The position numbers and the translations under genes were made by a program. This document shows, one piece after another, positions 1 through 51,996 of a stretch of DNA of 64,000 nucleotides. The DNA comes from Convolutriloba macropyga (Eukaryota), in contig NC_134474.1 in assembly GCF_964194025.1 (NCBI RefSeq), positions 13,330,001 through 13,394,000 of the forward strand. The letters run 5' to 3'. Every line of letters begins with the position of its first letter. The stretch's first letter is position 1. The notes beneath the pieces are model-generated. The model had not been told where the DNA came from. It worked only from the letters and a program-made list of their open reading frames with translations, and searched no databases.

Positions 1-715
1 TAAACTCTCAGACCTCAACATTTCATTGCTTTTTTGAAAGCAATTTATTAAAAATTTCTAACGGCCATAAACTTTTTTTTTAAAAATGAAGAGGTGTCTT
101 TGAAACTCTTTAGGAAACCTTGATTCAAGTTGTTCCGATCTGAAATTATTATATAAAAGCAAAAAAAACATGTTTCAAAAGACACAATGACTGAATACAA
201 TCGAAAACAATCTTGGGCTGTGAAAACAACGATTAGACCAAAGCTGACCATGCTATTGCTGTTCATCCGATAGAAATTTTTTTGATAATCCAAATATTAT
301 GAATAAAGATACTTGTCAAAAAATTCAGTAGAACAAAGTTAGATGATGCATTATAGATAATTATGGAGTTCAACAGCACAGTTTTATTTCAAGGATACTC
401 TCAGAGGAAACCCAAGTAAAACTAGCTCTCTTCGGAGTTGTTGAATATGGTTTCAGCAGTTTTGAAGTATGTTATTCTTGCTAATTTAAATAAAGTTGAA
501 AAAAGAAACTTATTTAGTGCCATTTTTCATGGAAAAAACTAAATTTTGAAAAAAAATGTTAAGAAAAATTGTAAAAAACATTAGGATGAAGATTTTCAAA
601 AACTTTTGGAACAGTCTACAGAACACACTTTAATTTTCGCGGATTTAACTATTGTGTTGGCTGAAAAACAACCAATGGACAAATTTTCAAATATGCAAGA
701 CAAAGAACAAAATAA
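1..715 (+). repeat. Direct repeat copy 1 (period ~1408 bp; may extend left of the window)
   Basis: 1 'taaactctcagacctcaacatttcattgct' matches 1409 'taaactcttagacctcgacatttcattgct' and stays colinear to 'aagaacaaaataa' (~715 vs ~2130). Confidence 0.9.
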
Positions 716-1408
716 CTTTTTAAGTCATAATCATTTCCGTCAACACAAGCTTTAATCAATTACGAGTTCACAGGGAAACTACAGACGAAAATCCAAAAGT
801 TTATTTTTTACAGGAAACCTCTGTCGAATCGAATAAAACAAAAATTGTGCTCTATAATCATAAGAAATTTTCAAATCAGTCTTTCCCCAACAGCAATGAT
901 GTCGTATGAGACCTATAAATAATAAAACTAGGCGACAAATGGACGGAAAAGAACGGCAAATTGCAATGTTAAAAATTACGCCAATACATCAAAAAAACAT
1001 TCGATTTTAAAGATGTGGAAAACATTAGCATTCAACTGAAATCAGTAAAGTAATTCCTCTCTTTATCCACGGGTACCCAGTTAGACCTTCGAATATCCTG
1101 AATTTGTCACATGAATACAAAAAAAACAGTAAACAAAGACAAAAATAACAAATTTTTTTTACTTTAGTCGTGAAGACGTTGATAAGCGTAATCCACTATC
1201 TGAAAACTGGATATACTTTTTGAAGGCCAATAAAATGATCTGTGACGTGTCAACTGTGACAAAAAGCAAAAAAGAACCACAATGATTATAATAATGTTCA
1301 ACATCAAAAATTTTTTGTGAAAACTAATAATAAATTTTAGTGCATCAGAAAGAGCATGCGACCTTTAAGAATGCTACATCTAAAAACCAGTTTGACCAAA
1401 ATAGAGAA

Positions 1409-2130
1409 TAAACTCTTAGACCTCGACATTTCATTGCTTATTTTCAAAGCAATTTATTGTAAATTTGTAACGACCATAATTTTTTTTAAAAAATGAAGAG
1501 GCGTCTTTGAAACTCTTTAGGAAACCTTGATTCGAGTTGTTCCGTTCTGAACTTATAATATAAAAGCAAAAAAATTTAAAAAATATGTTTCAAAAGACAC
1601 AGTGACTGAATACAATCGAAAACAATTTTGGGCTGTAAAAACAACGATTAGACTAAAGCTGACCATGCTATTGCTGTTCATCCGATAGAAATTTTTTAGA
1701 TAGTCCAAACATTATGGATAAAAATACTTGTCAAAAATTTCAGTAAAACAAAGTTAGATGATGCATTATAGATAATTATGGAGTTCAACGGCACAATTTT
1801 ATTTCAAGGATACTCTCAGAGGTAACCCAAGTAAAACTAGCTCTCTTCGGAGTTGGCGAATATGGTTTCAGCAGTTTTGAAGTGTGTTATTCTTGCTAAT
1901 TTAAATATATTTGAAAAAAGAAACTTATTTAGTGCCATTTTTCGTGGAAAAAACTAAATTTTGAAAACAAAATTGTTACGAAAAATTGTCAAAACATTAG
2001 GATGAAGATTTTCAAAATATTTCGGAACAGTCTACAGAACACACTTTAATTTTCGCGGATTTAACTAATGTGTTGGCTGAAAAACAACCGATGGACAAGT
2101 TTTCAAATTTGCAAGAAAAAGAACAAAATA
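1409..2130 (+). repeat. Direct repeat copy 2
   Basis: Colinear with 1-715, with scattered substitutions and small indels. Confidence 0.9.
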
Positions 2131-2717
2131 AATCTGTTTTAATTGAAAATTGCTCTCATCTTTGTTAAACTTTTTAAAAAAATTTACAAAATTTCATTAA
2201 GGTTCGAAGTTTCAGCACAGCTATAAAAGATATTATATGGTTTTCATATTAGGTGCCAATTCGTATTAGCACGCCATAATCGTCTCAAGCGTTACATGAC
2301 CATTATAAAAAAAGAAAATTAAGCACTACCAGGTGTGGGTTATAAAAAATAAGGTTGCGAAAAAAGAAAAAAAACCGCTCATTTCTATTTGAGTCACTTC
2401 TTTCTTGATAAAAGCTCTTAGTTATGTGGCATGCTGTAGTCAAAACTTCACTTTCACGTCTTTGCAGCAATATTATTAAGCCATTAACAACTTCGCAGCT
2501 TATAGCAGTGCTTGAAAAGTATCTGGAGCCCATAGAAGCTATTGTCCTAGAAAGAGAGCTCCTGATAATTAAGATGAGCTCAAGCCTTCTACTCTAGTTA
2601 CTATTCATTAATTAGAGAACACTGTGTCTCAACATAAGCAGGAAGACCCCAATTTACTTAAAGGTTAAAGAGCTTTACAGCAGAAGCCTGCGCTTGAGCT
2701 CAAAACCCTCTTTATAT

Positions 2718-3912
2718 TGTTAGCGCAAAATAACGGCCTCCGTCATCGGAACAAACTTCGTACTCGTCGTGCGTTCGAGATGGCGGAACTTACTCGGTCA
2801 CTTGAAAATTTCCCAATTTTGTTTTGTAGTTGGAGTACACCCGCTCACTGTCGGCAAGACTTGGTTTACTCATGTGTTACGGATTAGTTTGTAGTTGGTT
2901 CTCTACAGTAGCGCTTTCCTAAACGTTTCGCTTTCTCCATTTTTTAGTTATTCACTACCGTCCATTTTCCGCAGGTTTTTTTTCGGTTCTTTTTTCGAAT
3001 TAACATTTTTCCTGTCCCAACTTTTGCTCCTTCCTCGTATTTTTCTCCGTTTATCAGTTATATGATATAATAAGTTGATTTTGCTGCAGTAAATTTTTTT
3101 GTTGGTATACTTGTTGGAATGATTGTTTAGTTATGTTGCAAATTAGGTAATGACTTAATATTGTTCTGAAGTTAAGACTGGTTTGTAGCGTGACTGTAAA
3201 CATAATAGTTTGCTAGCTTTTGGTTTAAGCTTGTTTAATTTTTGGTAATAGTCTTTTTTGATGTCGAGGGATGTTGGCTTGATAGGGTGTGACTTAAATT
3301 TAATCTGAAGTTACGGCTAGTAAGTTTCTTGAATTTTTCGACAGTTTTTAGATACTACTTCTTTGCCGAAAACCAATTTAATATTGTTAGATTAAAACCT
3401 TTTTTGACTGGTTCTAGTTTGTGTTGCAGTCGCTTCTCTCCTTCTTTTTATGGTGTGACTGAAATTTGCTCTGGAGTTACGGCTAGTTTGTTGGGTTGTA
3501 GTCTGCATGCGTTAACCTTCTTGTCTTCTCGTATTTTTCGTCGTGCATTCTTTGTCCGTCGTCTCCATCCCGTCCTTATGGTTTTCCCGTTTCTTGGTGC
3601 GCTGTTTCTCCGGCGTCCAGTATCTATCGTATCCCGTGTTGTTGTGCGCTGCTTACCCGCCGTCCCCATCTTGTCCGTCTCGTCTTACCGCTGTGTCGTG
3701 CCTCCTTTTGCACGACTATTCCCTTTCTCCCGTTCTGTAGAGCGTTCCGCTTAATGCCTATATTTTCATTCGCTCGTTAACTCTATACTACACAAAACCT
3801 TTTGCCTTTTGGGGGTTTTGTGGGCAAACTGTCACACTAAGGTTTGGTATATTTTTTTGTGTCATGTGTTGTGTACATGTGAATGTACTTTTGTAACAGT
3901 ACTGAATTAAAC
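2718..3912 (+). repeat. Possible 5' LTR/leader of the Bel/Pao element
   Basis: Starts TGT at 2718, composition shifts, and it is followed by a TGG-initiated PBS-like 'tggttcccc' (3916-3924) just before gag. No matching 3' LTR found. Confidence 0.3.
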
Positions 3913-3930
3913 TTCTGGTTCCCCTTTAAT

Positions 3931-6590
3931 ATGATCATGGCAACATTGCAGGAAAAGTTTCCAAACGTTTATACTGCGAGGGCAGAAATAGAGGCTGAAT
4001 TTTTAAATATCTATAAGTGACATTACCAATGCTATTGATAAGCAAGACAGGAAACTTAGGATTGAGCGTATGATTGTTAAGTCCAAAAAAGCTTTTTCTG
4101 GCCTAATTGATAACAATTAGGAGCTCTTTGATATTGCGTTCAAACTGAAGCTCCTGTTGCCACCTGTAAGAACCAACCTGGAACAATGGCTAGAGACTGT
4201 AAACTAGAAAAATGACAACATTATCGCTGCCATTTGAAGGTACATTGATTCGGTCCAAGACAAAGAGCTAGCGGAGCAGTACAACTCTCACAATTCCAAA
4301 TGCTGATTGCATTTGACTTCCTCAAACCAGCGGCATCGTGACATAGAAATATCAGAACAAAAAAAGAGAACTTGAACAACAGCACAATTTAGAGCTGCGC
4401 ATTGCCAGACAGCGCCCTGAAATTGGAAAACAAATGTAATTGCGAGAATTAGAAATTCAGCAGCTTCTTGGAGGAACATCGCAAGCAGGTGGCTACTGCA
4501 ACCCTAAAAAATTTGAGTTAATGACGAAATCATCAGCGGATTTCTTAGGTCAGACAAAGGGAAGCTGAGCGAGTTGATTACTGAAAGGAACAAGGTAAAG
4601 AGCAGAAAATTTGTTAAAGTTTAGGTCAACTCGTAATTTGCCGGGAAAATGGAAGTTGTTGCAATGTATCCATCAACAATTTAACTTGCATCCCTTGAGT
4701 CTGAACACACAAGGTCAATTTGAGTCTATCATCATCCTCACTGTCAGAAGGCCGTAGAGCCCGGTAAAAAGTTATAATGCTCCTCTTGACACTAACAGCA
4801 TTCACGAACAGCAACAGCCTCAAAATACACCTCCATCACCATCAAAGACTTTGGTATACCAGAACAACTAAAGAATCCGAACACAGCCCGACAGCTGTCT
4901 CATACTACCATGCATTAGCCACCAGCAGACATAAAAGTGCCCAGAGTTCCATCTCAAATCTTTATCCCCATGGATCCGCAAATAAATTTAATTCTACCCG
5001 CATTTCGTTTCAGTCCTGCACCACAAGCGGCATTAAACGTTGCTATTGCAATGGTGGCAAACAAAGGCAATCAGTCACTGCCCTCTCCGCCTACGCAGAA
5101 CTGTTTCTCTCTCGCAATCGTTTTAGTACCGCACTTAACATTATCCACCGGCCCCACGGCAGAAATACAAGACCCTGAGTTCTGTACCCCAAACCATGCA
5201 TCTCTCCTACCGGATCCTAAATTTTGGCCGTTTCCGGCATCAGTCCCAGCTAATGCCATCCCACAGTTGCTACATCAGTAAACTTAAGCAACACACCGCT
5301 GGCAACGTAATACAACCCTTATGTCCCCATATTACTCAAGTTTAAGCAGCAGCAAGGTCCCAAAGTCACGTCACATCAGACTACATGTGACTGAAGTGTA
5401 TCCACTGGTACCGCACCACTGGTACCCTTTTAGTGCTTGTACCCTTTTAGTGCTTCCATTGGTACCGCACCAACCTTGGTCAATCCAAACGTTGCTTCAA
5501 AGCGTGGAGCTACCGTTCAGAAACCGGCCGTGTTGGGGTGACCCACCACATCCCATACCTTCGGCTCCGTCAATTGACTCGGCGGATTTTATAAAACAGT
5601 TGGCAGACCCAATCAAAAGCAAGAAGAACGATCCACCACCCAAGTGGTAATGGTCATAGTTTAAAGGTGCTCCCTGCAGTTTCATGAATTGATCGGGCAA
5701 ATTGGAAGAACCTTTGACTCGCAGTCGTTGACTAATGATGCGAAACTGATTTACTTTAAAACTCTATTAACTGGAAAACCAAAATATGCTTTTGCTGAGT
5801 TTGCATACTGCGGAAAAAAGTGTAAGGTTGCATTTAAGACACTTTAAAGTAAATTTGGCCGACCATAGGTAGTTTTCAGTACACACTTAAACAAATTGAG
5901 CTCTTTTTCCATAACTAAAATTTCCCAATAGTGACCACATAATACTTCGACTTTAATACGACGCTGATTTGAAGATCGTTTTGAAGCCTCGTTTTTTAAT
6001 CCACCTATAATGAAAGATCTTAGTCACTCTTCACGGTCCAAAAGCGTTGTTTAAAACCGACACTCCTCGACTTCAACGACTGGTTAAAACAAAAAGCAGA
6101 AGCGCGTGACGTGAAGAAGGAAACATCAAAGACAAGAACTGAGGATAACAACAATTCATTAGCAAAGGCTAAAGCTCCATCAAAAAAACGTTTGCTGCTA
6201 GCACTCAAACAATAAGCACTCAGCGACCAGCCTCAACATCGGCAACTACACCATCCTCCCGCTGCATTTTGTGTAAGGCTAATCACCGCATATGGGAGTT
6301 TTGGGTATTTAACGAAAAGTCTTCCACTCAGGGAACCAAGGTACTGGCCGAACAAAACTGTGCTTCTCAGGATTAGGGGAAAACATACGTTCCGGCAGTG
6401 CCGTAACCCCAACATAAAACACAGCTCCCATAAAACACATGTCCATGGAGCTGAGAGGGTTTATCCGTCAAAATCCTCTTCAATCAACAACAACGGTAAT
6501 TTTAATGCGGGCGCAAGTCGAAATAAACTTTCTAGTGGGCAATCATTGAGTAAAACCACTACAATGCCAACTGTCAATAATGTGTAAGGC
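3931..6590 (+). pseudogene. Bel/Pao gag (DUF1759-like) remnant
   Basis: ~5620-5800 reads 'KKNDPPPKW...FDSQSLTNDAKLIYFKTLLTGKPKYA'; decayed Cys/His knuckle region ~6260-6440. Confidence 0.75.
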
Positions 6591-41514: not shown

Positions 41515-43100
41515 TGACATTCTAGAAAAATACTTGGAAGGTCATTCAAAAAGATGAAAAACAGAAACGGGTCAAGTACGGAACGTTGTGGTACTCCACT
41601 AGTGACCAAAATCGGATCAGAAAAATAACCATCAAGATTTACAATTTGGGAACGGTTCTCCAGATAGGAGAAGAATAGGGTACAGAGCTCCTCCTCGAAG
41701 CCAAAAAGGTTCAGTTTGGCGATTAGATTTTCACGCGGAACTTTGTCAAAGGCCATTTCATAGTCCAAGTAAATCGTAAAAAGGGTATGGGATTTATTGC
41801 TGTACAATGTTTCCATATAGTCGGTTAATTGCAGAACTGCATTTTTTCGTGACTGGAAGCCGAACTGTTTGGGATGGATTTGGTGTTTAAATAATTCATA
41901 AAGATAATTGAAAAGTAAGCGTTCAAAAATCAAAGAGACTATTGGAAGTAAACTGATATGGCGGTAGTTTTCGATGTTGGATTTGAAAAGCTTTTTGTGC
42001 AAGGGCCTAACATAGGCTACTTTCTAAATAGCGGAAAAAGATCGAGATTCAGCAATTGAGTGAAAGAGATAAGATAGCAAATCTGCAGACAGATGTGGAG
42101 TTAACTAAAGGAGAGAACAAGGCAAGAAATCATTCGTCACGTAAGTTGCTGTTTTTGTGTTCAATATCTCATCTAAGAACAAATCAGGTCTTATGGATGA
42201 ACTGAAAAACTTGATTTTGATTGACTCGGCTGGAGCAAGTGGATTGCGGACATATGAGTTTGCGCTGATTTTTTTTAAAGAAATTGTTGAAGCAGTTTGC
42301 GATAGCTATAGAATCTTCAAGCGCTTTGTGTTTACACAACATTTGTTTGGGATAAGATGAAGTTTTCAGGCAATGTAGTAAATCAAAACAATCGGGTAGA
42401 CATGTGGTCATTGAACCGTTAAAAAAGCAAACCTTATCCATTTCGAAAAACGATTCAAACTCCGAGGCAAGTCGAAATATTTGAGATCAGTTGCTTTTTG
42501 TTGGGTTCCGGGCAGCTCGTTTACGCACCGTATTCAATTGGTTTAAAGTGTGCATAGTTAACAAGCTATAATAGAATGGATTTGCTTTGCGTTTTGATCG
42601 CTTACGCTGGAAGTTAGTTCGGATGCTGTTACACAGAAAATTATAGAAAGTTGTTACGTCGCTGCTAATCGACGAGGAATCAAAATTGAAATAAGTCCAA
42701 GATTCAACAAATTTATTGAGATTTGTTGCCTTGTAGATTTGTTTTTGCTTGCGGACAATGGTAGATATACGCACATAAAAACAAGAGCTTCAGACGAATT
42801 GTCTACCGCGAAAGCAGTTCAAAAGTCACTTTTGAGAAGTTTAAGTTGTCGCGTTACTAAGTCATTTGAAGTCTTACGTAGAACAGCAAATCCCCCATGT
42901 TGACCCTTGAGTTTGTCAACTCTCGTACTAGCTCATACTGACCAAAAAGTTTGAAGTTATCACTCATTGTGGAGGAATCGAGCCAGGTTTCTGTCAGGAT
43001 TGCTGTTTCTATTTCGTTGAGTATGAGGTAATTCAGTAAAGCTGATTGTTTGTCCATAGATTTAAATTATTGAACAGTAAGTAGTAGTATGCGTGACCTC
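41515..43100 (-). pseudogene. LINE ORF2 (APE endonuclease plus RT) remnant
   Basis: 'ILTETWL', 'NYRHISLLPIVSLIFERL', 'QFGFQ', 'YLDYEMAFDKVP', 'TSGVPQRSVLDPFLFFIFLNDL'. Confidence 0.9.
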
Positions 43101-43129
43101 AAAGATTGTCTTTCGTTTGGCACAGTTGT

Positions 43130-43906
43130 GGTTACCGAATTTGCCGATGATTTCAGTTTCTCAGACAAGAGAGGTCGTCCAAATCAGCAGAGTCAATCTG
43201 CATGCCGTTATGAAATAACTTAAGATCTCTGAGTCTGAGCAAGTCCCGATCTATGCCAAGCTGAATCAACTCAAATCGTTTGTGAAGCAGATCTTTTTCT
43301 GTGAGCCGATCTTTGCAGCAGAGTTTTGGTATAGCGAGTGACAGTTGGATAAAGTTATACGGCGACCGTAGATCGAGGCTAGCTGGATTTTCACTGGGCG
43401 AGGCCTAACTTATGCCTCCGGTTTGCGTTTGCCAAGGCGGACAATGTTATTTATTTTTTCAGGAACAATTTTGAGCTTATCGCAAAAAGTTTGTACATTA
43501 GAATCATCTTGGGAGGATCTGACCTCGGCAATGTTGAATAGAACATTAGTCTCTTCAGCTTTGATGTCATAATCCCGCTCATCGAGGGTTCTTTTGACGG
43601 CATCGGCTTAGTTGGTGTGTTGACTGGAGCTCAGGCCTTGATGATTCAGGGCAACCGTTTCAATATTCACAAGTTTCCTTTCAATGAATTTGACTGCTTA
43701 AGCAGTTTCTGAGATGATTCCACTAAATTTTTCCATTTTTTTACAGTCATTCAATTGCGACAGGGTTTCACGAAGCAAACATTCCAGGGTACTCTCTTTA
43801 GCTTTTGATGTGAAAATCGATAATTCATTTGGGGCAGCGGCGAGGAGTTCGCTAATTGTGGGGTAATAGTCTTACTAGAGGTTGAACGGTTACGGTGTTC
43901 AGTCAT
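43130..43906 (-). pseudogene. LINE ORF1 remnant (coiled coil plus RRM-like/CTD)
   Basis: ATG at 43906; 'IVRLGKRKP..RPRPVKIQL', 'EKDLLHKRFELIQLGIDRDLLRLRDLKLF'. Confidence 0.7.
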
Positions 43907-43933
43907 TTTTAAAATGGGAAGGAAGAAGAAAAA

Positions 43934-44597
43934 TCACCAAACCAGCAAGTACCCTGTGGCACCTACTAGAGGAGACCTGCGGATACTTACTTTGAATGTG
44001 CAGTTACAGTGTTTGTAGAGACACTCGAACACCTGAGCGTTGTTTTCAATCGCTGCACCTTTATCGTACATCACCTTGTTCTTCATCACCTTCTTCTTCT
44101 TGTTCTTGATTGAATGCCTCGCGACCTTCGGCACTTAGGTGGTAACCGTTGTTACCCAAATGGTCCTCGCAGTAGATTTTTTCAGACACTCCCCGATACT
44201 TCCATCGACTTGACTGAGCAACCTTTCGAATTTCAGCGTTCACCGTGGATGCACGTGCGCGGGCGTCTCCGCGATGAGGAATACCAAGTACAAATACCGA
44301 ACTCGCGAGGTCACACAAGGAATCGGCAAGAAGAGCTAGTTCTTTGGCTATGTCTAAAGCTGGTACTGTTAAAGGTGTCCGTCGGTCGTAAACGTCGTTT
44401 CCACCAACGAAAAGTACAATAGTTTTATATTGGTTCTTTCGAGGATAGAAATTAGCTGTAACGTTTCCAATACGGGCTCCGGGGATAGATAAAATATTGA
44501 ATTTAGAAAATTGCAGATCTTTTGCTTAAGAGTCAGCTATCAAAAGGTTGTTAGAAGATGTATCTTTGAAGGTGTGAGATCTTTTCACAGTAGTCAT
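43934..44597 (-). pseudogene. SGNH hydrolase/esterase ORF (SGNH-B)
   Basis: Blocks I 'LLIADS*', II 'SIPGARI', III 'LFVGGND', V 'NGYH'; C-terminal 'ECLYKHCNC'. One stop and one frameshift. Confidence 0.85.
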
Positions 44598-44859
44598 AGG
44601 GGATAACCACGGCTATCTCAGTAAATCAATAATTATCTGAAACTCTATTTATCAATATTTATCTGAAAGGTATTTATCTGAAAGGTATTATCTTCAAGCA
44701 TGATAATACCTTAATCGCTGTCCAGGGATCTATTGTATACGTCTTAACTGGGATTACTTTGACGACCGAAATAGGGGGATTAAGGGATATAGAAATGAAC
44801 GGCGAAGGGCAGCAAGAAGGACCGTGGCCGCCGCACGGGGCCTATGGCTTTCTAACCAG

Positions 44860-45309
44860 AGAAAGAACCAACGACAACTGCTTTGCCGGGGACGCTCAGA
44901 ATCTTTGGGATGGCTTCTGCTGGCACTCTTGTTCGAATACAGGACCTTGTTTTTATTTGGCGATGCGAGGTTTCCTTTCCCTTTATCGTTAATGTGCACG
45001 TAGTAGTTACCAAACAACTGGGCATTCGACCAAACTGCGTAACTTATGCCGCGAAAATCCCAACTGTACTTGTCTGATTTCTCGCTTAATCGCTTGTTTA
45101 GTGTAAATTAGCGAAACAATTCGTGGTCCTGATAATTAGCTTGAAACGTTTCAAGTTCATCTTTCGGGGGCCAACGTGGGGGGATGCCAAAGACAAACAC
45201 CTTTTCAATAATTTTAAATGTTTTTTTGCTAAGTCGGCTATCATCGACAACTTCCTGTATGGTCAATTTGGAAGGGAGGTAACTGTTGTACAGGTCGTTT
45301 CCTCTAATT
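44860..45309 (-). pseudogene. SGNH-A, C-terminal part
   Basis: 'IRGNDLY', 'KVFVFGIPPR', 'WDFRGIS', 'YVHIN..G..NL..KNKVLY..HP'. Confidence 0.8.
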
Positions 45310-45332
45310 GTTGTGATAAACTTATTAAATAG
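45304..45332 (+). other. Spliced-leader-like 5' terminal motif (ctaattgttgtgataaacttattaaatag)
   Basis: 22/22 identity (45310-45331) to the reverse complement of 50305-50326; ends in AG. The SL identity is an inference. Confidence 0.55.
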
Positions 45333-45521
45333 AGTCAATATTAGCCAACGCCCCGAATGACTCCGAACAAATTTACAAACCGTGTGATTTCAGATCATTT
45401 GAAGCTAGGAACTATATCAATAAGACCACCGGTACCAGTTATTGGTTCCAACGGTTTATATCTATCTTTCCTTCAAGCCCCGTCCGTTCCTAGCTTGGAC
45501 GGGTGAATAAAAGAAGACTGA

Positions 45522-46140
45522 ATGCGATTTCATATCTTTAAAACTTCCAAGACCAGAAACATAATTTTTGCAGATTCCCAATTGAAACATCTCCGATTTC
45601 CAAATTTTAACATTCTATCACTTCCAGGAGCGCAAATTCGACATCTATCAGAAATCTTACCGGAAAAAAGGTAATACGACAATATAGTTTTATTCATTGG
45701 TGGAAACGACATCTTCACCGGCTCAACACCATCGAACAAAGAACCAGAAGTAACATGCCTTACTAGCCGAAGAACTTTTGCCCCTTGCGACAGAGAAAGT
45801 ATTTGTAATTGGCATCCCATCACGAGGAAGCGACAGTGCGAGTAAAAAGAAGGCCAAAGCAACAAACGAATTCATCAACAAATTACAAAAAAAGAGTAAA
45901 AAGTGGGAATACAGAGGCATCACTGAAGAAGTTTATTCCCCGGAATTACACTTGAGTAACGACGCCGTCCACCTCAACGGGAAGGCCTTTGGAGGAATCT
46001 GCTCCAAATTAAAGAACAAAATCCTACGCACAACTTTCAGCGCAAACATAGACAAAAAAGACCATCCAAAGGAATACCACTGTGCTGGGAACTGCGAGTG
46101 TGGTTCGTACAACCCCACGATTTACCAACGGTACCAGTAA
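45522..46140 (+). pseudogene. SGNH hydrolase/esterase ORF (SGNH-C)
   Basis: 'IIFADSQ', 'SLPGAQI', 'LFIGGND', 'NDAVHL' (DxxH), tail 'HPKEYHCAGNCECG'. One stop and one frameshift. Confidence 0.88.
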
Positions 46141-46228
46141 TTGGTTCCAAAGGTAAATAAGTTTTTCTTTCCCCAATTTTCCACCCGTTTAAACTTCGAA
46201 TTTTTCTATAAATCACACACACAACGGA

Positions 46229-47085
46229 ATGAGTTCCAAAATATCTGGTAAACAAATTCAATTAGAGGGTATGAGTATCCAATGTGAAACCTGTTCTAAG
46301 CCAATTGGTAAAAAAGAAGCAATCTTCCGTTGCGTATGCTCTGCCACAATCATGCACATGTCCCCAAGCTGCACAAAACTTAGCATCGAAATAATAAATG
46401 CACTTCAACAGGTCAATCAAAACGTTCTGCTTCTATGCAACGCTTGCGTACAGCAGAACAAACGTGATGTGATTCTGGACATCAAAAAAAGTCCACCACA
46501 AAAACAAAACAATCTAGAAATCAAATAGGACATTCAAACCACAATCAAAGAAACTATTAGCAGCAAAATAAATGAAATTGGGAATAAACTGCCAACAGCT
46601 AACAACAACATTGAAAAAACCCCACAGTAAAGGCTAGAACTGCAAATGACCTGGCAATCAGAATAAGAGGAATAGATGAAAGTAAGAAAGAAACCGCTCG
46701 TGAAAGAGCTGAAGAAGATATACAAGAAATACAGTCAATCCTCAAATTCCTCAAGCTAGACTGCCAAATTACGGACTGCAGGCGCATGGGTGCTTTCAAA
46801 GATGGAAGGCATCGTACCATTCTTGCAACCATGCCATGCATGTATGACAAACGCATCTTACTACTCTCACTCTCAAGATTGAAACGATATAGCAAAACAG
46901 TGTACATTAGCAAAGGCTACTCCCTACAAGAAGAAGAGCACTTGAATAACTGTCTGAAAAAGCGAAAAGACTTAATAGACGCAGGTTTCCCCAGAAAAAA
47001 CTTGAAAGTAATGAATCTGACATTATACGAAAAACAAGATGAAAATTGGGTCGAATACTTAGACAATGCTCGGTATTCCACCTGA
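46229..47085 (+). pseudogene. LINE ORF1 with N-terminal PHD finger
   Basis: 'CETC...CVC....H...C...LLCNAC' PHD-like pattern, coiled coil, 'RRMGAFKDGRHRTIL', 'LKKRKDLIDAG'; stops and frameshifts around 46490-46680. Confidence 0.85.
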
Positions 47086-47089
47086 CTCG

Positions 47090-50000
47090 CAAAAAATACA
47101 GACAAAAAACAAGAGGTATCATTTCTAACGTTTAATTTACATAGTTTCATTGATCTACCACGTAGATTTGCATTTGCAAACGCTATTGTCCCCTACAATC
47201 CAGACATTCTTTGCCTAACCGAGACATGGCTCACAGAAGAAGTTCCAAACGAAGCACTCTTTCTCAAAAGTTTTGTCATTCACAGAAATGACACAACTTC
47301 AAAATGCGGTGTCTCAAAACATGGAGGTGTTCTAGTGGCGGTAAAAGACAACATTCAATCTAAACAATTGTTTGTTAAGAACACATGTGAGGGTTGCCTA
47401 ATCGTAAAAATTAACACTAAAAATGACTCAATCCTATTGTCTGTATTTACAACCCACCTAAAAGCAGCCCATACAGATGGTGCAAGCAGAAGTTTGAAGA
47501 CCTCACACAAACGCTAAAGTTTTTAGAGAAGAAAACAAAGCCAAAATCAATCATCATTACAGGAGATCTCAACTTCTCAACCACTGACTGGAAACAAATG
47601 TCGTCACCAGATGAACTTGACAACACCTGGCTCAACTATTTCGTAGATGAAAATTTTGAACAAATGCTAAACTTCACTGACCTTTTGGGGTACAAAAAAC
47701 GGCTAGATGTCTTCCTAACAAACGAACCACAATTTTAGATCAATTCGAAAATCGAAGCCAAAATTAGTAATAACTATGCCCTCAACAACAAATAATGCTC
47801 AGATCATTACGCTTACATAACACGATACGAATGCAACTACGATCAAGCGACCGATCGCAGCAGACCAAAATACGCTTACAAAAGAATATATTGGATTAAA
47901 TTCAACTGCAACATCTCAAAAAACCCATTTAACCCCTATTGTTACAGTAACGTTGACGAACTTCTTAAACAATGATATGAATGGTTCAATCGCCTTTTCG
48001 ATCAAAAGGTCCCAAAAGTAACTCAGCACAGATCACAGCTCCCCCCGTAGGTGTCAAAATGCACATCCCATGAAATGAAAAAACTATCAACTTTGAAACG
48101 AAAAGCAATTGCCCATCCAAGTCCTGCTCCAAACACACTAAACAAAATAGATTGTCTCGAAGAAAAAGTCAACACACTTTGTAAAAACGATCAAGTCATC
48201 TATGAAAGCAAGATTTTCGCAACACGTCAATTCAGCTTTATTCAAAAATATTTACGATCAATTAAAAAAGTCACACCATTCCAAAGCGAGATGCACCTAA
48301 ATGAACAAACTGCTAACACCAATGAAGAGAAAGCCGAGTTGTTCAATTTATTTTTCCAGAGTGTTTTCAATTCAAAAACATCAAATATTGAGAACCAGTT
48401 CAATTTTGAAGAAAAAGATCCTAATCACTTTGATATTTCAGAAAAAGAAATTGAAAGTATACTAAACAAACTTGATACTAGTAAAGCCAACGGCCCTGAT
48501 GATATAAGTAACCTGTTTTTGAAAAATCTATCTAAAACATTAAGCAGATCCTTACTTCTACTTTTTCAAACATTCATTAACAAAGGTAAATTTCCAGCAT
48601 ATTGGAAACAAAGTGACATAACACCAATACACAAAGAGGGCGATAAAGCCACAATCAAAATGTATAGACCAATTATTTGCCTATGTTGCCTCCCAAAAGT
48701 TTTCGAGAAACTTATTTTCAACAAACTCTATGAGCACGTTAAAGGAACACTTCACGATTCCCATTTTTGTTTTCGGCCTCAACGTTAAGCAATTATTCAA
48801 ATGTTATGCTTTCTAGACCAACTGTACAAAGAAGTCGACTCAATTGAACATGATGAACTTTTCGTTTTCTACCTAGATTTCCAGAAAGCGTTTGATACAG
48901 TACCCCACCACCGCGTTAATGCAAAACTGTCGGAATCAGGGATCGGGGGAAAAGCGCTCAGATTAATAGCCAACTACTGTGACGACAGAAAACAACGTGT
49001 TCGCATTGGAACCTCAACGTCGAGCCTTCGTGACGTCACTAGCGGCGTACCGCAAGGTTCAATCCTGGGGCCACTACTTTTTCTCGTCTACATAAATAAT
49101 TTACCACAAAAAATCGAATACAGTCAAACCTACGGTTATGCAGATGATTAAAAATTGCTCTCTAATAACAAACATGAACTTCAAACTGATCTCCAGAAAT
49201 TAAATGAATGGTGCAATAACAACGAAATGCGCCTCCATGAAAACAAATGCAAGATCCTCTGTTTCAAGAAAAACTCACTCTTTACAATAAAAAATGAAAT
49301 TGTCAACATCTCGTCTCATCAAAAGATCTCGGAATACAAGTTTGTGATAACCTCACTTGGCATCAAAACGCAAGCACACGAGCCTCCAAAATTCTTTAAG
49401 CACTTTGGTACCTCGAAGAAATCTTCACCACAGAACTCTCCCTCAAGTTAAATTAAACGCATACACGGGTTACATTGTACCAATTATATCCTACGCCTGC
49501 CAAGTGTGGTATCCTTCTTAATGCGATCTAGTACTCATCGAAAGAATCCAAAAAAGTGCGACGAAATGGATAATAGGTTCTTCTCTCACATATAAGGAGC
49601 GTTTAGTCAAACTGAAAATTCTACCTCTGCCTTTTTACTTCGAACTTCACAGCTTATTACTACTATGTGATATCATAAACAATAAATACAACATTGCCAT
49701 AGAAAAGTTTATACATTTCAACAACAATAATCGGACGAGACAAGGCGCGAAATGTGAAATCAAACTTACGAAAAAACGATTATTCAAAAGCGACGAAAAT
49801 TTCTGGTCGAGAACAGCCTATCTCTATAATATTGTCAACAAACAGACAGACCTTACAGACAACAAAAATATAAAATATCGGATCAGCGACATTTATTGGA
49901 AATTCTTTTTTAGAAGTTTTAACGAAATTGACATGTGCACTTGGAGAATTTGCTGCCTGTGCAAAAACTGTAACCCCATTTCGAAAATATCTCATTTATA
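47090..50000 (+). pseudogene. LINE ORF2 (APE endonuclease plus RT)
   Basis: 'FLTFN', 'DILCLTETWL', 'TGDLN', 'SDH', 'GPDDI', 'YLDFQKAFDTVPH', 'SGVPQGSILGPLLFLVYINNL', 'YADD', C-terminal 'WRICCLCKNC'. Several stops. Confidence 0.93.
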
Positions 50001-50064
50001 ACGATCAACAAGGGTGCTTCAACCCGTGCATTGCAGAAGCCTGAACTACTAATACTACTACTAC

Positions 50065-50238
50065 AATTAGCAAAGCAATCCGGTCGTACTGGACAGGAGC
50101 TGGAAGAAATTGATGGACGTTTTCTACTCTGGCAGCAGGCAGCTATAGGACATTGATTTCAGGGTATTAGATGTGCTTCACTTAAGAATCTCCAATTAGG
50201 AGACCTTTGTTGTTAGATGATTTGAAGGTATATCTCAT
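50065..50238 (-). pseudogene. SGNH-A, N-terminal part
   Basis: 'MRYTFKSSNNKGLLIGDS*VKHI*YPEINVL*LPAARVENVHQFLPAPVQYDRIALLI'; joins 'RGND' at 45305 in frame. Confidence 0.8.
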
Positions 50239-50303
50239 ATCACATACACGCAGGTCTCCAAAAAACTTCGATTGAAGGTACTCCACACCACGCGTTTGAA
50301 GAC

Positions 50304-50330
50304 ATATTTAATAAGTTTATCACAACCATT
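50304..50330 (-). other. Spliced-leader-like 5' terminal motif of the older LINE
   Basis: Reverse complement reads 'aatggttgtgataaacttattaaatat', ~70-90 nt upstream of the SGNH-A ATG. Confidence 0.5.
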
Positions 50331-50928: not shown

Positions 50929-51996
50929 ATGAATAGGGAGTTTCAGCCAACCTGCGATGGCTATGGCAATAACCATCGTTATAGTAACGGAAAGTTTTTC
51001 AATCCCTGGTCTCGTGAAGCTAAAGGCCTGGGTTTCACAGGCATTACATGGGAATTTCTGAAGTATATGCGCATGCATAAGAATCCCGACACATTGGCAC
51101 CAGGTGAAGAAAATTTATCCGAACAAGAATTTTTGGACAAACGGCTTCCAGTCTTAAATTTTGATGGCAGAACTGCAGAGAATGCCAAGGCGCCAGATAA
51201 AGGAATGCGATGCGTATGGCTTGGTCATGCATCGTGCTTAGTTCAGTTTGACAATATATCAATTTTGGCTGATCCCCTATTCAGCGACCACTGTGCTCCG
51301 TTTCAGTTTAAAACAATGCCTAAAAGGCTTCGAAAAGTTCCATGTACAGTTGAGGAGTTGCCACCTATTGATATTGTGGTTATAAGTCATAACCATTATG
51401 ACCATTTGGACTATCATTCCGTCAAAGCATTAAACGAATCACAGGGTTCCAGAGTTAGTTGGTTTGTCGGCCTTGGTTTGAAAAAATGGTTTAAAGATAT
51501 GGGAATTGAAAACGTTTATGAACTGGATTGGTGGGAGGAGCATAAACTTAACGAAAATATCACGGTAGTTTTCACTCCTACGCAACATTGGTCAAAGCGA
51601 ACGCCGTTTGATACCAACTGGACTTTGTGGGGAAGCTGGTTGGTTAGAAGTGCTAATTATAAATTTTTATTTCTCGGCGATACAGGATACTGTCAAACGT
51701 TTAAAACAATCGGTGATAAGTTTGGACCAATAGACTTAGCCGCTATCCCGATCGGAGCTTATCACCCTAGAAAGTTTCTAGAATTACAGCACGTAGATCC
51801 AAAGCAAGCGGTGCAAATACACAAGGACGTGCAAGCAAAGAAGAGTATTGGAATACACTGGGGAACTTTTACTCTGGGTCGCGAAGCCCATATGCAACCA
51901 AAGGATGATCTAGCTAGAGAAGTTAGAGCAGCTAATTTGACAAATGAAGATTTCTTCACTACTAATATCGGCGAATGTGTTCATTTATTTACGTAA
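50929..51996 (+). CDS. NAPEPLD: N-acyl-phosphatidylethanolamine-hydrolysing phospholipase D (metallo-beta-lactamase fold)
   Basis: Intact 355-aa ORF with 'FFNPW', 'WLGHAS', 'DPLFS', 'SHNHYDHLD' (HxHxDH), 'ELDWW', 'QHWSKR', 'LWGSW', 'GDTGY', 'PIGAY', 'HVDP', 'IHWGTF'. The frame is open from 50848, so the true start may be upstream. Confidence 0.93.
   Translation: MNREFQPTCDGYGNNHRYSNGKFFNPWSREAKGLGFTGITWEFLKYMRMHKNPDTLAPGEENLSEQEFLDKRLPVLNFDGRTAENAKAPDKGMRCVWLGHASCLVQFDNISILADPLFSDHCAPFQFKTMPKRLRKVPCTVEELPPIDIVVISHNHYDHLDYHSVKALNESQGSRVSWFVGLGLKKWFKDMGIENVYELDWWEEHKLNENITVVFTPTQHWSKRTPFDTNWTLWGSWLVRSANYKFLFLGDTGYCQTFKTIGDKFGPIDLAAIPIGAYHPRKFLELQHVDPKQAVQIHKDVQAKKSIGIHWGTFTLGREAHMQPKDDLAREVRAANLTNEDFFTTNIGECVHLFT

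Follow-up and report, generated by a model that had tools for sequence, protein, structure and literature searches.

In LINE retrotransposons, esterase-type and RRM/PHD-type ORF1 proteins have been described only as alternatives in ORF1 surveys (PMC4120745, PMC3905857), and the two have hitherto been treated as alternative solutions to RNP assembly. The esterase-type (Type IV) ORF1p of CR1/L2 LINEs is represented by ZfL2-1 from zebrafish (PDB 4c1a/4c1b; Kapitonov & Jurka 2003; Schneider et al. 2013, PMC3905857). In this element the esterase is the ORF1p itself. It is encoded by the sole upstream ORF, carries an N-terminal coiled coil, lacks an RRM and was crystallised as separable half-domains in 4c1b (PMC3905857). 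Type IIC ORF1 combines a PHD with a transposase_22-like CC/RRM/CTD region and is found in L2 subgroup 6 and CR1 subgroup 5 (Metcalfe & Casane 2014, PMC4120745). A GDSL esterase is also encoded by ORF3 of Vesta LTR retrotransposons and of Athena/Terminon elements from bdelloid rotifers (Rodriguez et al. 2017, PMC5408684), a study that reported independent captures for the esterases of rotifers and of LINEs.

Here we describe a LINE family in which a separate esterase gene lies ahead of a complete RRM-type ORF1 with a PHD-like finger. Three separate genes, for an esterase, ORF1 and ORF2, were not found together in the full-text literature and ORF1 surveys that were covered. The first-pass annotation's refuting condition, an architecture already catalogued, found no support within these limits. 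The copy in the window, which denotes the whole stretch of 64,000 nt that was analysed, is called element P. It is full-length and dead, and the LINE family to which it belongs has a high copy number in an acoel-type genome. The working layout of the family is a spliced-leader (SL) 5' end with a 5' UTR, ORF0, a spacer, ORF1, a UGA-CUC junction, ORF2 and an (ACT)n tail. Translation located the ORF0, ORF1 and ORF2 parts of P at the coordinates given here together with the other features of the region:

41526-44585, minus strand: element M1, with a decayed SGNH ORF0, an RRM-like ORF1 remnant, an APE motif and RT (Pfam, tblastn, translation)
44841-45305, minus strand: continuation of the SGNH ORF of element M0, residues ~50-200 (tblastn to P0025: 33% identity, E 1.6e-23)
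45306-50064, plus strand: element P, the whole LINE copy
45306-45332, 27 nt, plus strand: SL-derived 5' end of P, AATTGTTGTGATAAACTTATTAAATAG (match to published SL)
45333-45521, plus strand: 5' UTR of P, conserved in L001-L004
45425-45471, plus strand: hairpin motif in the 5' UTR, folding at -10.4 kcal/mol
45522-46140, plus strand: ORF0, an SGNH/GDSL esterase gene standing on its own, disrupted in this copy (translations, five-copy alignment)
46124-46172, plus strand: second hairpin copy, in direct orientation and 82% identical to the one at 45425-45471, with the ORF0 stop UAA in its loop
46141-46228, plus strand: ATG-free spacer between ORF0 and ORF1 (alignment, ATG counts)
46229-47085, plus strand: ORF1, with a predicted PHD-like finger, helix and LINE-1 ORF1p-like RRM/CTD, broken here (fold match of intact P0127)
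47086-50001, plus strand: ORF2, in frame with ORF1 and carrying many lesions, for an APE endonuclease and a reverse transcriptase (Pfam)
50002-50064, plus strand: 3' UTR and (ACT)n-type microsatellite tail, without poly(A)
50065-50330, minus strand: 5' part of M0, with an SL-like start at 50330-50304 (SL match) and the N-terminal part of SGNH at 50247-50074 (tblastn, residues 1-59)

The esterase gene had been read as an ORF from 45522 to 46140 with its own stop. The terminal TAA at 46138-46140 is present and kept in the family, but these 619 nt are not divisible by 3 and do not form one open frame in the window copy, where the frame is interrupted by a TAA (45672-45674) and shifted by the loss of 11 nt after 45751. 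Several further breaks lie in ORF1 and ORF2 of P. Because the window copy is dead, its own stop codon proves nothing. Both ORF0 lesions are private to this copy, and position 45672 is a C in all other contigs. In 5/5 aligned copies, P and four further family members (84-94% identical), the TAA at 46138-46140 is kept together with the spacer, the start codon of ORF1 and a +1 frame offset. The spacer of 88 nt was confirmed, with the ORF1 ATG at 46229; it measures 94 nt in the others (range 88-94 nt), and a 6-nt deletion after 46178 is private to the window copy.

The same conclusion is reached at the protein level. An exhaustive search returned 122 representatives of ORF0 relatives, 120 of which are no longer than 253 aa; the other two are a protein of 320 aa and a weak match of 2128 aa. 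No fusion of ORF0 to ORF1 was found among the 122. Full-length relatives have ~195-215 aa (mode ~200 aa) with the domain starting near residue 22, and there are clusters with dozens of near-identical proteins that measure exactly 195 or 204 aa. In the P family the ORF0 product has ~206 aa and a C-terminal His/Cys motif. This motif, H-x(4-7)-C-x(3-5)-C-x-C, is kept across families and the stop follows 5-8 residues later. SGNH and ORF1 thus do not share one frame, in the five copies or in the relatives.

The three-gene look could still be an artefact, namely one esterase-PHD-RRM ORF1 with a mutational stop, or an SGNH sequence that belongs to a nested or neighbouring element. The region would invite such a reading: decay has gone far in the window copy, whose SGNH part contains a stop and a frameshift, and it lies in a pile of nested elements in which P itself sits inside the SGNH ORF of another element. 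We regard this explanation as highly improbable, since it is already contradicted by the alignment, the protein search and the intact copies. Apart from the stop and offset common to five copies and the missing fusion protein, the alignment of the copies extends without division from the 5' UTR through the 3' tail, with the SL upstream of SGNH, contig coverage of ORF0 is similar to that of ORF1, and intact three-ORF copies are present in other assemblies. Furthermore, the divergent families L006 and L008, from other assemblies, have SGNH in the same position and the same layout. The expectation that SGNH occurs in other copies was therefore borne out. The proposal of a conserved lineage instead of a chance chimera is supported; neither a fused frame, nor copies lacking SGNH, nor an earlier description in the literature covered speaks against it.

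The neighbouring elements are on the minus strand. M0 is an older element that was split by the insertion of P; joining its two parts over P gives back the reading ALLI|RGNDLY. In M1 the SGNH ORF0 (44585-44124, with a tail to ~43937) matches Pfam Lipase_GDSL_2 with an E value of 5.5e-6 and is 50% identical to the intact protein P0006. The APE motif ILTETWL is found by translation near 43020 and RT by tblastn at 42086-41526. The claim that the layout recurs in a minus-strand element stands for the SGNH ORF, an ORF1-like stretch, APE and RT; it does not stand for the PHD, which is not visible, and the ORF1 is recognised at motif level only.

All four catalytic blocks attributed to the esterase were located in the translation of the window copy. 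These are FADSQ (block I, Ser codon 45576-45578), LPGA (block II, Gly 45627-45629), GGND (block III, Asn 45705-45707) and DAVH (block V, Asp 45961-45963, His 45970-45972). In an alignment of 24 sequences, conservation is 90% or higher at the Gln of DSQ, the block II Gly, the G and N of block III and the D and H of block V; the block I Ser is outside the nearly invariant columns, and DSQ is present in most full-length members. An intact 204-aa relative, P0009, aligned with the window ORF0 by tblastn in two halves with 68% and 49% identity. It scored 35.8 bits against Lipase_GDSL_2 (gathering cut-off 32.9), a profile that matches 15/24 members. The AF2 model of an intact relative (pLDDT 91.9) matched SGNH structures with Z scores of 14-16.6 over ~160 residues; the values for PAF-AH Ib and sialate O-acetylesterase were Z 16 over more than 160 residues at 2.4-2.6 A. 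By its blocks, profile and modelled alpha/beta/alpha fold ORF0 belongs to the SGNH/GDSL hydrolase superfamily, and its product is a predicted hydrolase. An N-terminal coiled coil was not seen in ORF0: block I begins at ~residue 17-22, the model has strands from residue 4 and there is no long N-terminal helix. The ZfL2-1 esterase 4c1b, a structure of separable half-domains, was absent from the PDB profile search (E up to 1) and from the best 50 rows of the Foldseek and VIA structure comparisons, so homology to the known LINE esterases is shown at the superfamily level. We also considered ORF0 as a Type IV ORF1p and rejected this assignment on account of its own conserved stop, the separate RRM-type ORF1 downstream and the lack of the N-terminal coiled coil.

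ORF1 of the window copy contains a TAG at 46526-46528 and a 1-nt deletion after 46613; it ends with a TGA at 47083-47085, followed by CTC. An intact ORF1 is the 285-aa protein P0127, found in L001. The top 11 Foldseek matches of its AF2 model are all human LINE-1 ORF1p (2yko, 2ykq, 2ldy, 2w7a; E 1.4e-5 to 2e-3), and the predicted RRM and CTD (residues 143-276) have a pLDDT of ~80-89. A match to the Pygopus PHD (TM 0.65-0.68 by target, E ~0.015) falls in a region with a pLDDT of 55-78. The Pfam PHD model does not match ORF1 of the P family, in which the zinc-finger spacing is atypical (His-x4-Cys); its Cys/His pattern aligns with the Pfam-recognised PHD ORF1 of another LINE. Residues 96-119, between PHD and RRM, are modelled as a single helix with a pLDDT below 60. 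The fold search supports the PHD/coiled-coil/RRM architecture proposed for ORF1 in its RRM/CTD part and makes the N-terminal finger a candidate PHD; the helix may form a coiled coil.

The assignment of ORF2 as APE-RT was confirmed by Pfam, which gave Exo_endo_phos (1.1e-6), Exo_endo_phos_2 (7.9e-8) and RVT_1 (6.9e-14) in the window copy; ORF2 of L006 likewise matches all three profiles. The (ACT)n tail is present in P, L001-L003 and L008, and L006 has (CAA)n. ORF2 lies in frame with ORF1 beyond one UGA, and the TGA-CTC junction is kept in all copies of the P family. Four families have an in-frame ORF2 after TGA-CTA or TGA-CTC, with UGA-CUA in three related families. UGA-CUA(G) is a context for stop-codon readthrough, and stop-codon readthrough is known for retroviral gag-pol. 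The conserved junction suggests that ribosomes may occasionally read through the UGA and so produce ORF2 fused to ORF1. For LINE ORF1-ORF2, UGA readthrough is not described in the review PMC3894237.

The 5' end of P matches positions 5-31 of the spliced leader published for Symsagittifera roscoffensis, GCCTAATTGTTGTGATAAACTTATTAAATAGA (PMC9911081). The SL 22-mer occurs twice in the window, with 0 occurrences expected. In other copies the SL is joined at different acceptor positions, and at least three alternative acceptors are found in the 5' UTR. The element also carries structured repeats. The second of the two hairpins in P folds at -12.8 kcal/mol (z -2.86), and the outer stems of the two copies differ by compensating changes. 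L001 carries the same pair and all other spacers examined contain 2-7 hairpin repeats; the sequence and number of the motif and its distance to the AUG vary between families. The presence of hairpin repeats in every spacer is unexplained by leaky scanning.

The expression of three genes from one element was examined in the light of the distribution of start codons. Over the ~700 nt from the ORF0 AUG to the ORF1 AUG there is almost no other AUG. From the SL junction to the start codon of ORF1 we counted 1-3 ATG (0-2 extra, all frames) against ~13 expected. Four intact ORF0s contain 0, 0, 0 and 1 out-of-frame ATG, compared with 4.5, 5.6, 2.8 and 1.7 after synonymous-codon shuffling; for one of the four, that of L008, depletion at the synonymous level is not significant. 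The same shuffles detected no ATG depletion in ORF1 or ORF2. Internal Met makes up 0.3-0.4% of the ORF0 proteins and is absent from 20 of 29 full-length ones. The ORF0 AUG is followed by a pyrimidine at +4 and frequently has another at -3, whereas the ORF1 AUG has purines at both positions; exceptions are L005 and L006 with an A at -3 of the ORF0 AUG. The scarcity of ATG in ORF0 together with the weaker context of its AUG points to leaky scanning. According to this scheme the element RNA would be trans-spliced to the host spliced leader and serve as one mRNA; ribosomes that skip the poorer ORF0 AUG would scan on and initiate at ORF1. Among sequencing runs recorded as RNA, none was found to contain this part of the genome.

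Two other routes to ORF1 have to be weighed. SL trans-splicing could resolve the polycistron, such that an acceptor in the spacer gives ORF1/ORF2 its own capped mRNA and ORF0 is translated from the full-length RNA. The host uses the SL, the element RNA is itself SL-spliced within its 5' UTR and most copies have a polypyrimidine run ending in AG in the spacer (tttttctttccccaatttattAG). However, among the best-supported joints listed the SL runs to 45392 and 45367 and none to the spacer, and 0 SL-bearing 5' ends at 13 loci start at the spacer. The strong avoidance of ATG in ORF0, which includes synonymous sites, would moreover be needless if ORF1 had its own mRNA. We consider this route unlikely. 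ORF1 could also be reached by termination-reinitiation or by a structured RNA (IRES/shunt), with the stop-spanning hairpin holding or recruiting ribosomes. This fits the position of the 49-nt motif, which in the P family precedes the start of ORF0 and that of ORF1 alike by ~50-60 nt, the compensating changes that preserve the outer stem and the recurrence of hairpins in the other spacers. Neither mechanism, however, predicts a near-total loss of ATG across ORF0, and the hairpins differ between families as described above. Reinitiation after an ORF of 200 codons is normally inefficient in eukaryotes, which also argues against it. We judge this second route a little less likely still. Leaky scanning remains the preferred reading. 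The whole explanation, in which an SL-bearing LINE with three genes would use leaky scanning and UGA readthrough and carry an accessory esterase on a portable ORF0 cassette, appears probable to us from the sequence comparisons. The near-AUG-free ORF0 and the UGA-CUA junction would then make this a LINE with virus-like translation devices, by which a single mRNA yields three proteins in set ratios.

ORF0 is found on other retroelements too. Taken together, the 5' UTR and ORF0 of the P family match L010 with 66% nucleotide identity over ~650 nt (E 3e-41); the long ORF of L010 is of the PHD-RT-CCHC/RLE type and unrelated to ORF2 of P. An LTR element, L007, is also headed by an ORF0 homologue. The occurrence of the leader-plus-ORF0 module on unrelated backbones suggests that retroelements of one host lineage have exchanged modules. 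ORF0 with its leader may thus be a portable cassette, the same module heading an RLE-type LINE and an LTR retrotransposon. We see an even chance that the AUG-free esterase with its SL-accepting, hairpin-bearing leader is a portable acoel 5' cassette, which moved between APE-LINEs, RLE-LINEs and LTR elements and acts as first cistron of a tricistronic mRNA expressed by leaky scanning and UGA readthrough. If true, a lipid esterase would be a general, exchangeable accessory factor of retroelements and not one alternative form of ORF1.

How does the P family compare with the known systems? Rice tungro bacilliform virus expresses its ORFs I-III from a polycistronic RNA by leaky scanning, with an AUG-depleted upstream coding region and a poor first start. 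The P family resembles it in having an AUG-depleted upstream ORF with a poor initiation site; the virus, however, is a plant pararetrovirus and not a LINE, and the proteins are unrelated. With readthrough systems the family has in common that the upstream structural protein and the polymerase share a frame, with only one UGA in a leaky context between them. Like LINEs of the CR1/L2 group (Jockey superfamily), P has APE followed by RT in ORF2 and a microsatellite 3' end without poly(A); the likeness is by these features. The rotifer GDSL ORF3 and ORF0 are both stand-alone extra genes common to different classes of retroelements (here APE-LINE, RLE-LINE and LTR), but the former lies downstream of pol in LTR elements, while ORF0 is the first cistron and occurs in a different host phylum. 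Type IIC ORF1 has the same order of an N-terminal PHD-like finger, a helix and an L1 ORF1p-like RRM/CTD as is predicted for ORF1 of the P family, in which the zinc finger differs by its atypical His-x4-Cys spacing without a Pfam PHD match; Type IIC elements are described with two ORFs, and the P family adds an esterase gene before ORF1. ZfL2-1 and the P family share an SGNH esterase with catalytic blocks upstream of an APE-RT ORF2, a microsatellite-type 3' end and an esterase structure, modelled in our case, that is closest to PAF-AH-type SGNH hydrolases. Unlike that of ZfL2-1, the esterase of the P family is separate, has ~200 aa without a coiled coil, ends in a His/Cys motif and precedes a complete RRM-type ORF1. 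By analogy with the proposal for the esterase-type ORF1p of ZfL2-1, the ORF0 esterase is most likely an accessory factor for the association of the element RNP with lipids or membranes. The retention of an esterase gene alongside a separate RRM-type ORF1 gene indicates a distinct task for the esterase, and the P family offers a natural system for testing this task independently of RNA binding.

The DNA of the window is eukaryotic and AT-rich, and three-frame translation of 45200-50200 made a LINE copy visible on the + strand. This copy, called P, is organized as follows.

Layout of element P
45522-46140, + strand: SGNH-like esterase region (ORF0), from translation
after 46140, + strand: ORF0-ORF1 spacer of 88 nt, from translation
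ATG at 46229 to TGA at 47083-47085, + strand: ORF1, zinc-finger/helix/RRM-like, from translation
to 50001, + strand: ORF2, an APE-RT in the frame of ORF1, from translation, with APE and RT identified by Pfam
end at 50064, + strand: short 3' UTR with an (ACT)n-type tail

P is a decayed relic and is dead. Its SGNH region is interrupted by an in-frame TAA (45672-45674) and has lost 11 nt after 45751, ORF1 is damaged by one TAG and one 1-nt deletion, and ORF2 has many breaks. Because the SGNH region of P is not literally open, the separateness of the esterase had to be judged on other copies; the statements about the family rest on copy-to-copy comparison.

A word-based protein search with a 120-aa C-terminal SGNH piece as the query found four close relatives of P. 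These loci (L001-L004, ENA assembly ERZ25071359) align with P from the 5' UTR through the 3' tail at 84-94% identity. All five aligned copies have the SGNH stop (TAC CAG TAA, or CAA TAA in one), a spacer of 88-94 nt, the ORF1 ATG and an ORF1 frame that is +1 relative to SGNH, while the lesions differ from copy to copy. Contigs of public runs, no run being recorded as RNA, are numerous over all of P, with ORF0 coverage comparable to that of ORF1; they have a C at the position of P's TAA (45672), and P alone carries the 11-nt deletion, a 6-nt deletion and several deletions of 1 nt. When 1.84 billion representatives were searched exhaustively by phmmer with a 154-aa minus-strand SGNH query, 122 hits resulted, among which no fused esterase-ORF1 protein was found. 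All except two of them are at most 253 aa long; the remaining two are a 320-aa protein and a weak 2128-aa hit. Full-length ORF0 relatives cluster at 195-215 aa, with the domain starting near residue 22, and most members of the three 90% clusters (n=24, 62 and 32) are exactly 204, 195 and 204 aa long, respectively. The first-pass annotation had described an SGNH ORF with its own stop. This holds for the family but not for P itself, whose ORF is interrupted. Its interpretation of the esterase as an additional gene in front of ORF1 is supported, and the three-gene observation is real at the family level. In one of the four relatives (L002, 7689-11115) the segment equivalent to window 45934-47405, which reaches from the C-terminal end of ORF0 across the spacer and ORF1 into the start of APE, is present as four tandem repeats.

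Intact or nearly intact three-ORF units also occur in two divergent families from other assemblies, so that the presence of SGNH in other copies extends beyond the close relatives of P.

Three-ORF units in other assemblies
L006 (ERZ25071366): 195-aa ORF0, ORF1, APE-RT
L008 (ERZ26859043): 204-aa ORF0, 312-aa ORF1, APE-RT

Locus L008 contains in addition, at 3668-600 on the minus strand, a LINE with a full spliced leader (SL) whose ORF1 is of the canonical PHD type (Pfam PHD_Pygo) and which has APE and RT but lacks an esterase gene; hence two-ORF relatives coexist with three-ORF ones.

The 5' end of P at 45306, AATTGTTGTGATAAACTTATTAAATAG, matches GCCTAATTGTTGTGATAAACTTATTAAATAGA, the SL published for the acoel Symsagittifera roscoffensis (PMC9911081); the 22-mer core of this leader occurs twice in the window, where no occurrence is expected. 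P furthermore interrupts an older minus-strand element, M0.

Element M0, split by P
50330-50065 and 45305-44841, - strand: the two parts of M0, with an SL-like start at 50330-50304

P lies exactly between the N-terminal (50247-50074) and C-terminal (45353-44841) parts of the M0 SGNH, and the frame joined across P restores ALLI/RGNDLY (slash at the joint). The exact split and the restored frame mean that P is a complete insertion unit, with SGNH as its first coding region.

About 250 nt past the SGNH of M0 there is a second, different SGNH gene without a spliced leader of its own (M1, 44585-41526, - strand). M0 and M1 may belong to a single element that carries two esterase genes, or the arrangement may have arisen by nested insertion; the tandem reading found no support, the one M0-type relative compared (L009) having a single SGNH. 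The proposed recurrence of the three-gene layout on the minus strand is borne out in part. M1 has an ORF0 (44585-44124, - strand) that is 50% identical to that of L006, together with an APE motif and RT, but its ORF1 is recognisable at the motif level only and its PHD is not recognisable. A candidate PHD remnant at about 44060-43960 was dismissed, as the C-terminal tail of M1 ORF0, shifted in frame, occupies this stretch. The truncated RT of M1 adjoins a third decayed LINE fragment (M2, 41441-39700, - strand), which starts within an RRM-type ORF1 and continues into APE/RT. Just past this pile of transposons, at 50929-51996 on the + strand, lies an intact 355-aa ORF with a metallo-beta-lactamase fold (Pfam Lactamase_B_2, E 6e-38), which is probably a host gene.

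The ORF0 product was characterized on aligned family members and on an intact 204-aa relative (P0009, 55-68% identical to the P family). Pfam Lipase_GDSL_2 matches 15 of the 24 aligned members, P0009 exceeding the gathering cut-off. The residues of blocks II, III and V are at least 90% conserved at a mean identity of 36%, and most full-length members carry the DSQ of block I. The window's own short SGNH fragments gave no Pfam match because they are too short; the longer minus-strand piece and the intact relatives do match. A mixed alignment of the window fragments was too ragged for profile use. The AlphaFold model of P0009 (pLDDT 91.9) resembles sialate O-acetylesterase and PAF-acetylhydrolase Ib (Z 16, more than 160 residues, 2.4-2.6 A). 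The esterase of the zebrafish ZfL2-1 ORF1p (4c1b) was absent from the profile hits and the top 50 structural matches; against PDB sequences, phmmer with the 154-aa piece and the 24-sequence profile gave marginal GDSL matches only, none of them to the ZfL2-1 esterase. At the very end of the protein (window 46066-46110, + strand, and the ORF0 protein alignment), divergent families share the motif H-x(4-7)-C-x(3-5)-C-x-C with the stop 5-8 residues on; the motif is a candidate zinc-binding tail. Between families, ORF0 identity is only 35-45%, at which synonymous sites would be saturated for dN/dS, and copies inside one family decay neutrally.

Fold comparison supports the reading of ORF1 as a PHD-like/RRM protein. 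In the model of the intact 285-aa ORF1 (P0127) the N-terminal finger matches the Pygopus PHD, and the best 11 PDB matches of the confident C-terminal domain are all human LINE-1 ORF1p. The P-family ORF1 also aligns with a Pfam-recognised PHD ORF1 from another LINE and, with its PHD-like finger, corresponds to what Metcalfe & Casane call a 'Type IIC' ORF1 (PMC4120745).

ATG triplets are rare between the SL junction and the ORF1 ATG, with 1-3 over all frames compared with about 13 expected, whereas ATG numbers in ORF1 and ORF2 are normal. Four intact ORF0s have 0, 0, 0 and 1 out-of-frame ATGs versus 4.5, 5.6, 2.8 and 1.7 in shuffles that preserve protein sequence and codon usage; the same test found no depletion in ORF1 or ORF2. 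Internal Met makes up 0.3-0.4% of ORF0 residues and is missing from 20 of the 29 full-length proteins. At +4 the ORF0 AUG is followed by a pyrimidine, which is also frequent at -3; around the ORF1 AUG both positions hold a purine. Taken together, these sequence features look like a signature of leaky scanning, by which ribosomes would pass ORF0 and reach the ORF1 AUG. The alternative, an operon-type trans-splicing of the SL to an acceptor-like site in the ORF0-ORF1 spacer (about 46184), would give ORF1 and ORF2 a capped mRNA of their own; it is weakened by the fact that no SL joints to the spacer are among the joints listed from public-run contigs. In four divergent LINE families the stop of ORF1 is a TGA with CTA or CTC behind it; ORF2 lacks a start codon and extends the frame of ORF1.

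TGA-CTC/CTA junctions
window 47083-47088, + strand
L006, 8134
L008, 8359
L008, 2604, minus strand

This context suggests a candidate programmed UGA readthrough, which would occasionally yield an ORF1-ORF2 fusion.

Several LINE copies start with the SL.

SL starts of LINE copies
window 45306-45332, + strand
window 50330-50304, - strand
L003, 5851-5873
L008, 3668-3658
L010, 229-258

The SL is joined to the 5' UTR at several different acceptor positions, which indicates that the element RNAs had undergone trans-splicing before they were reverse-transcribed. P's ORF0 has its closest intact relative (P0009 cluster) in L010.

Element in L010 (ENA ERZ16600325)
229-4671: full 31-nt SL, 5' UTR, ORF0, then a single 1066-aa ORF

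In this 1066-aa ORF, RT lies between a PHD-like finger and a CCHC/restriction-like endonuclease tail, and the ORF is unrelated to the ORF2 of P; the 5' UTR and ORF0 share 66% nucleotide identity with the P family over about 650 nt (E 3e-41). In L007 (6501-10345) an ORF0 homologue heads an LTR retrotransposon with RT-RNaseH-integrase. The leader and ORF0 thus appear to be a portable cassette, heading an APE-LINE, an RLE-type LINE and an LTR element. In the P family a 49-nt hairpin motif lies on both sides of ORF0 (window 45425-45471 and 46124-46172, + strand), with the ORF0 stop within the loop of the second copy, and every ORF0-ORF1 spacer examined has 2-7 hairpin repeats.

Spacer hairpins
L005/L010
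L006, 7102-7214
L007, 7106-7172
L008, 7114-7348

Speculatively, the hairpin pair flanking ORF0 in the P family would fit an acquisition of ORF0 through recombination in a shared leader.

Literature searches brought up nothing relevant on three-ORF or ORF0 esterase LINEs, and the architecture proposed in the first-pass annotation is without a match in the papers covered. Esterase ORF1s are known from CR1, L2, RTEX and Penelope-like elements (PMC3905857), and PHD/RRM ORF1s from CR1/L2 (PMC4120745). Neither these two surveys nor a 2026 survey of the vertebrate CR1 group (PMC13343379) describe more than a single ORF ahead of ORF2, whereas the P family has two, ORF0 and ORF1. The LINE esterases in the papers compared are not described with a His/Cys tail like that of ORF0. 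In rotifer LTR elements a stand-alone GDSL ORF is ORF3 (PMC5408684); in the P family the stand-alone esterase is the first gene.
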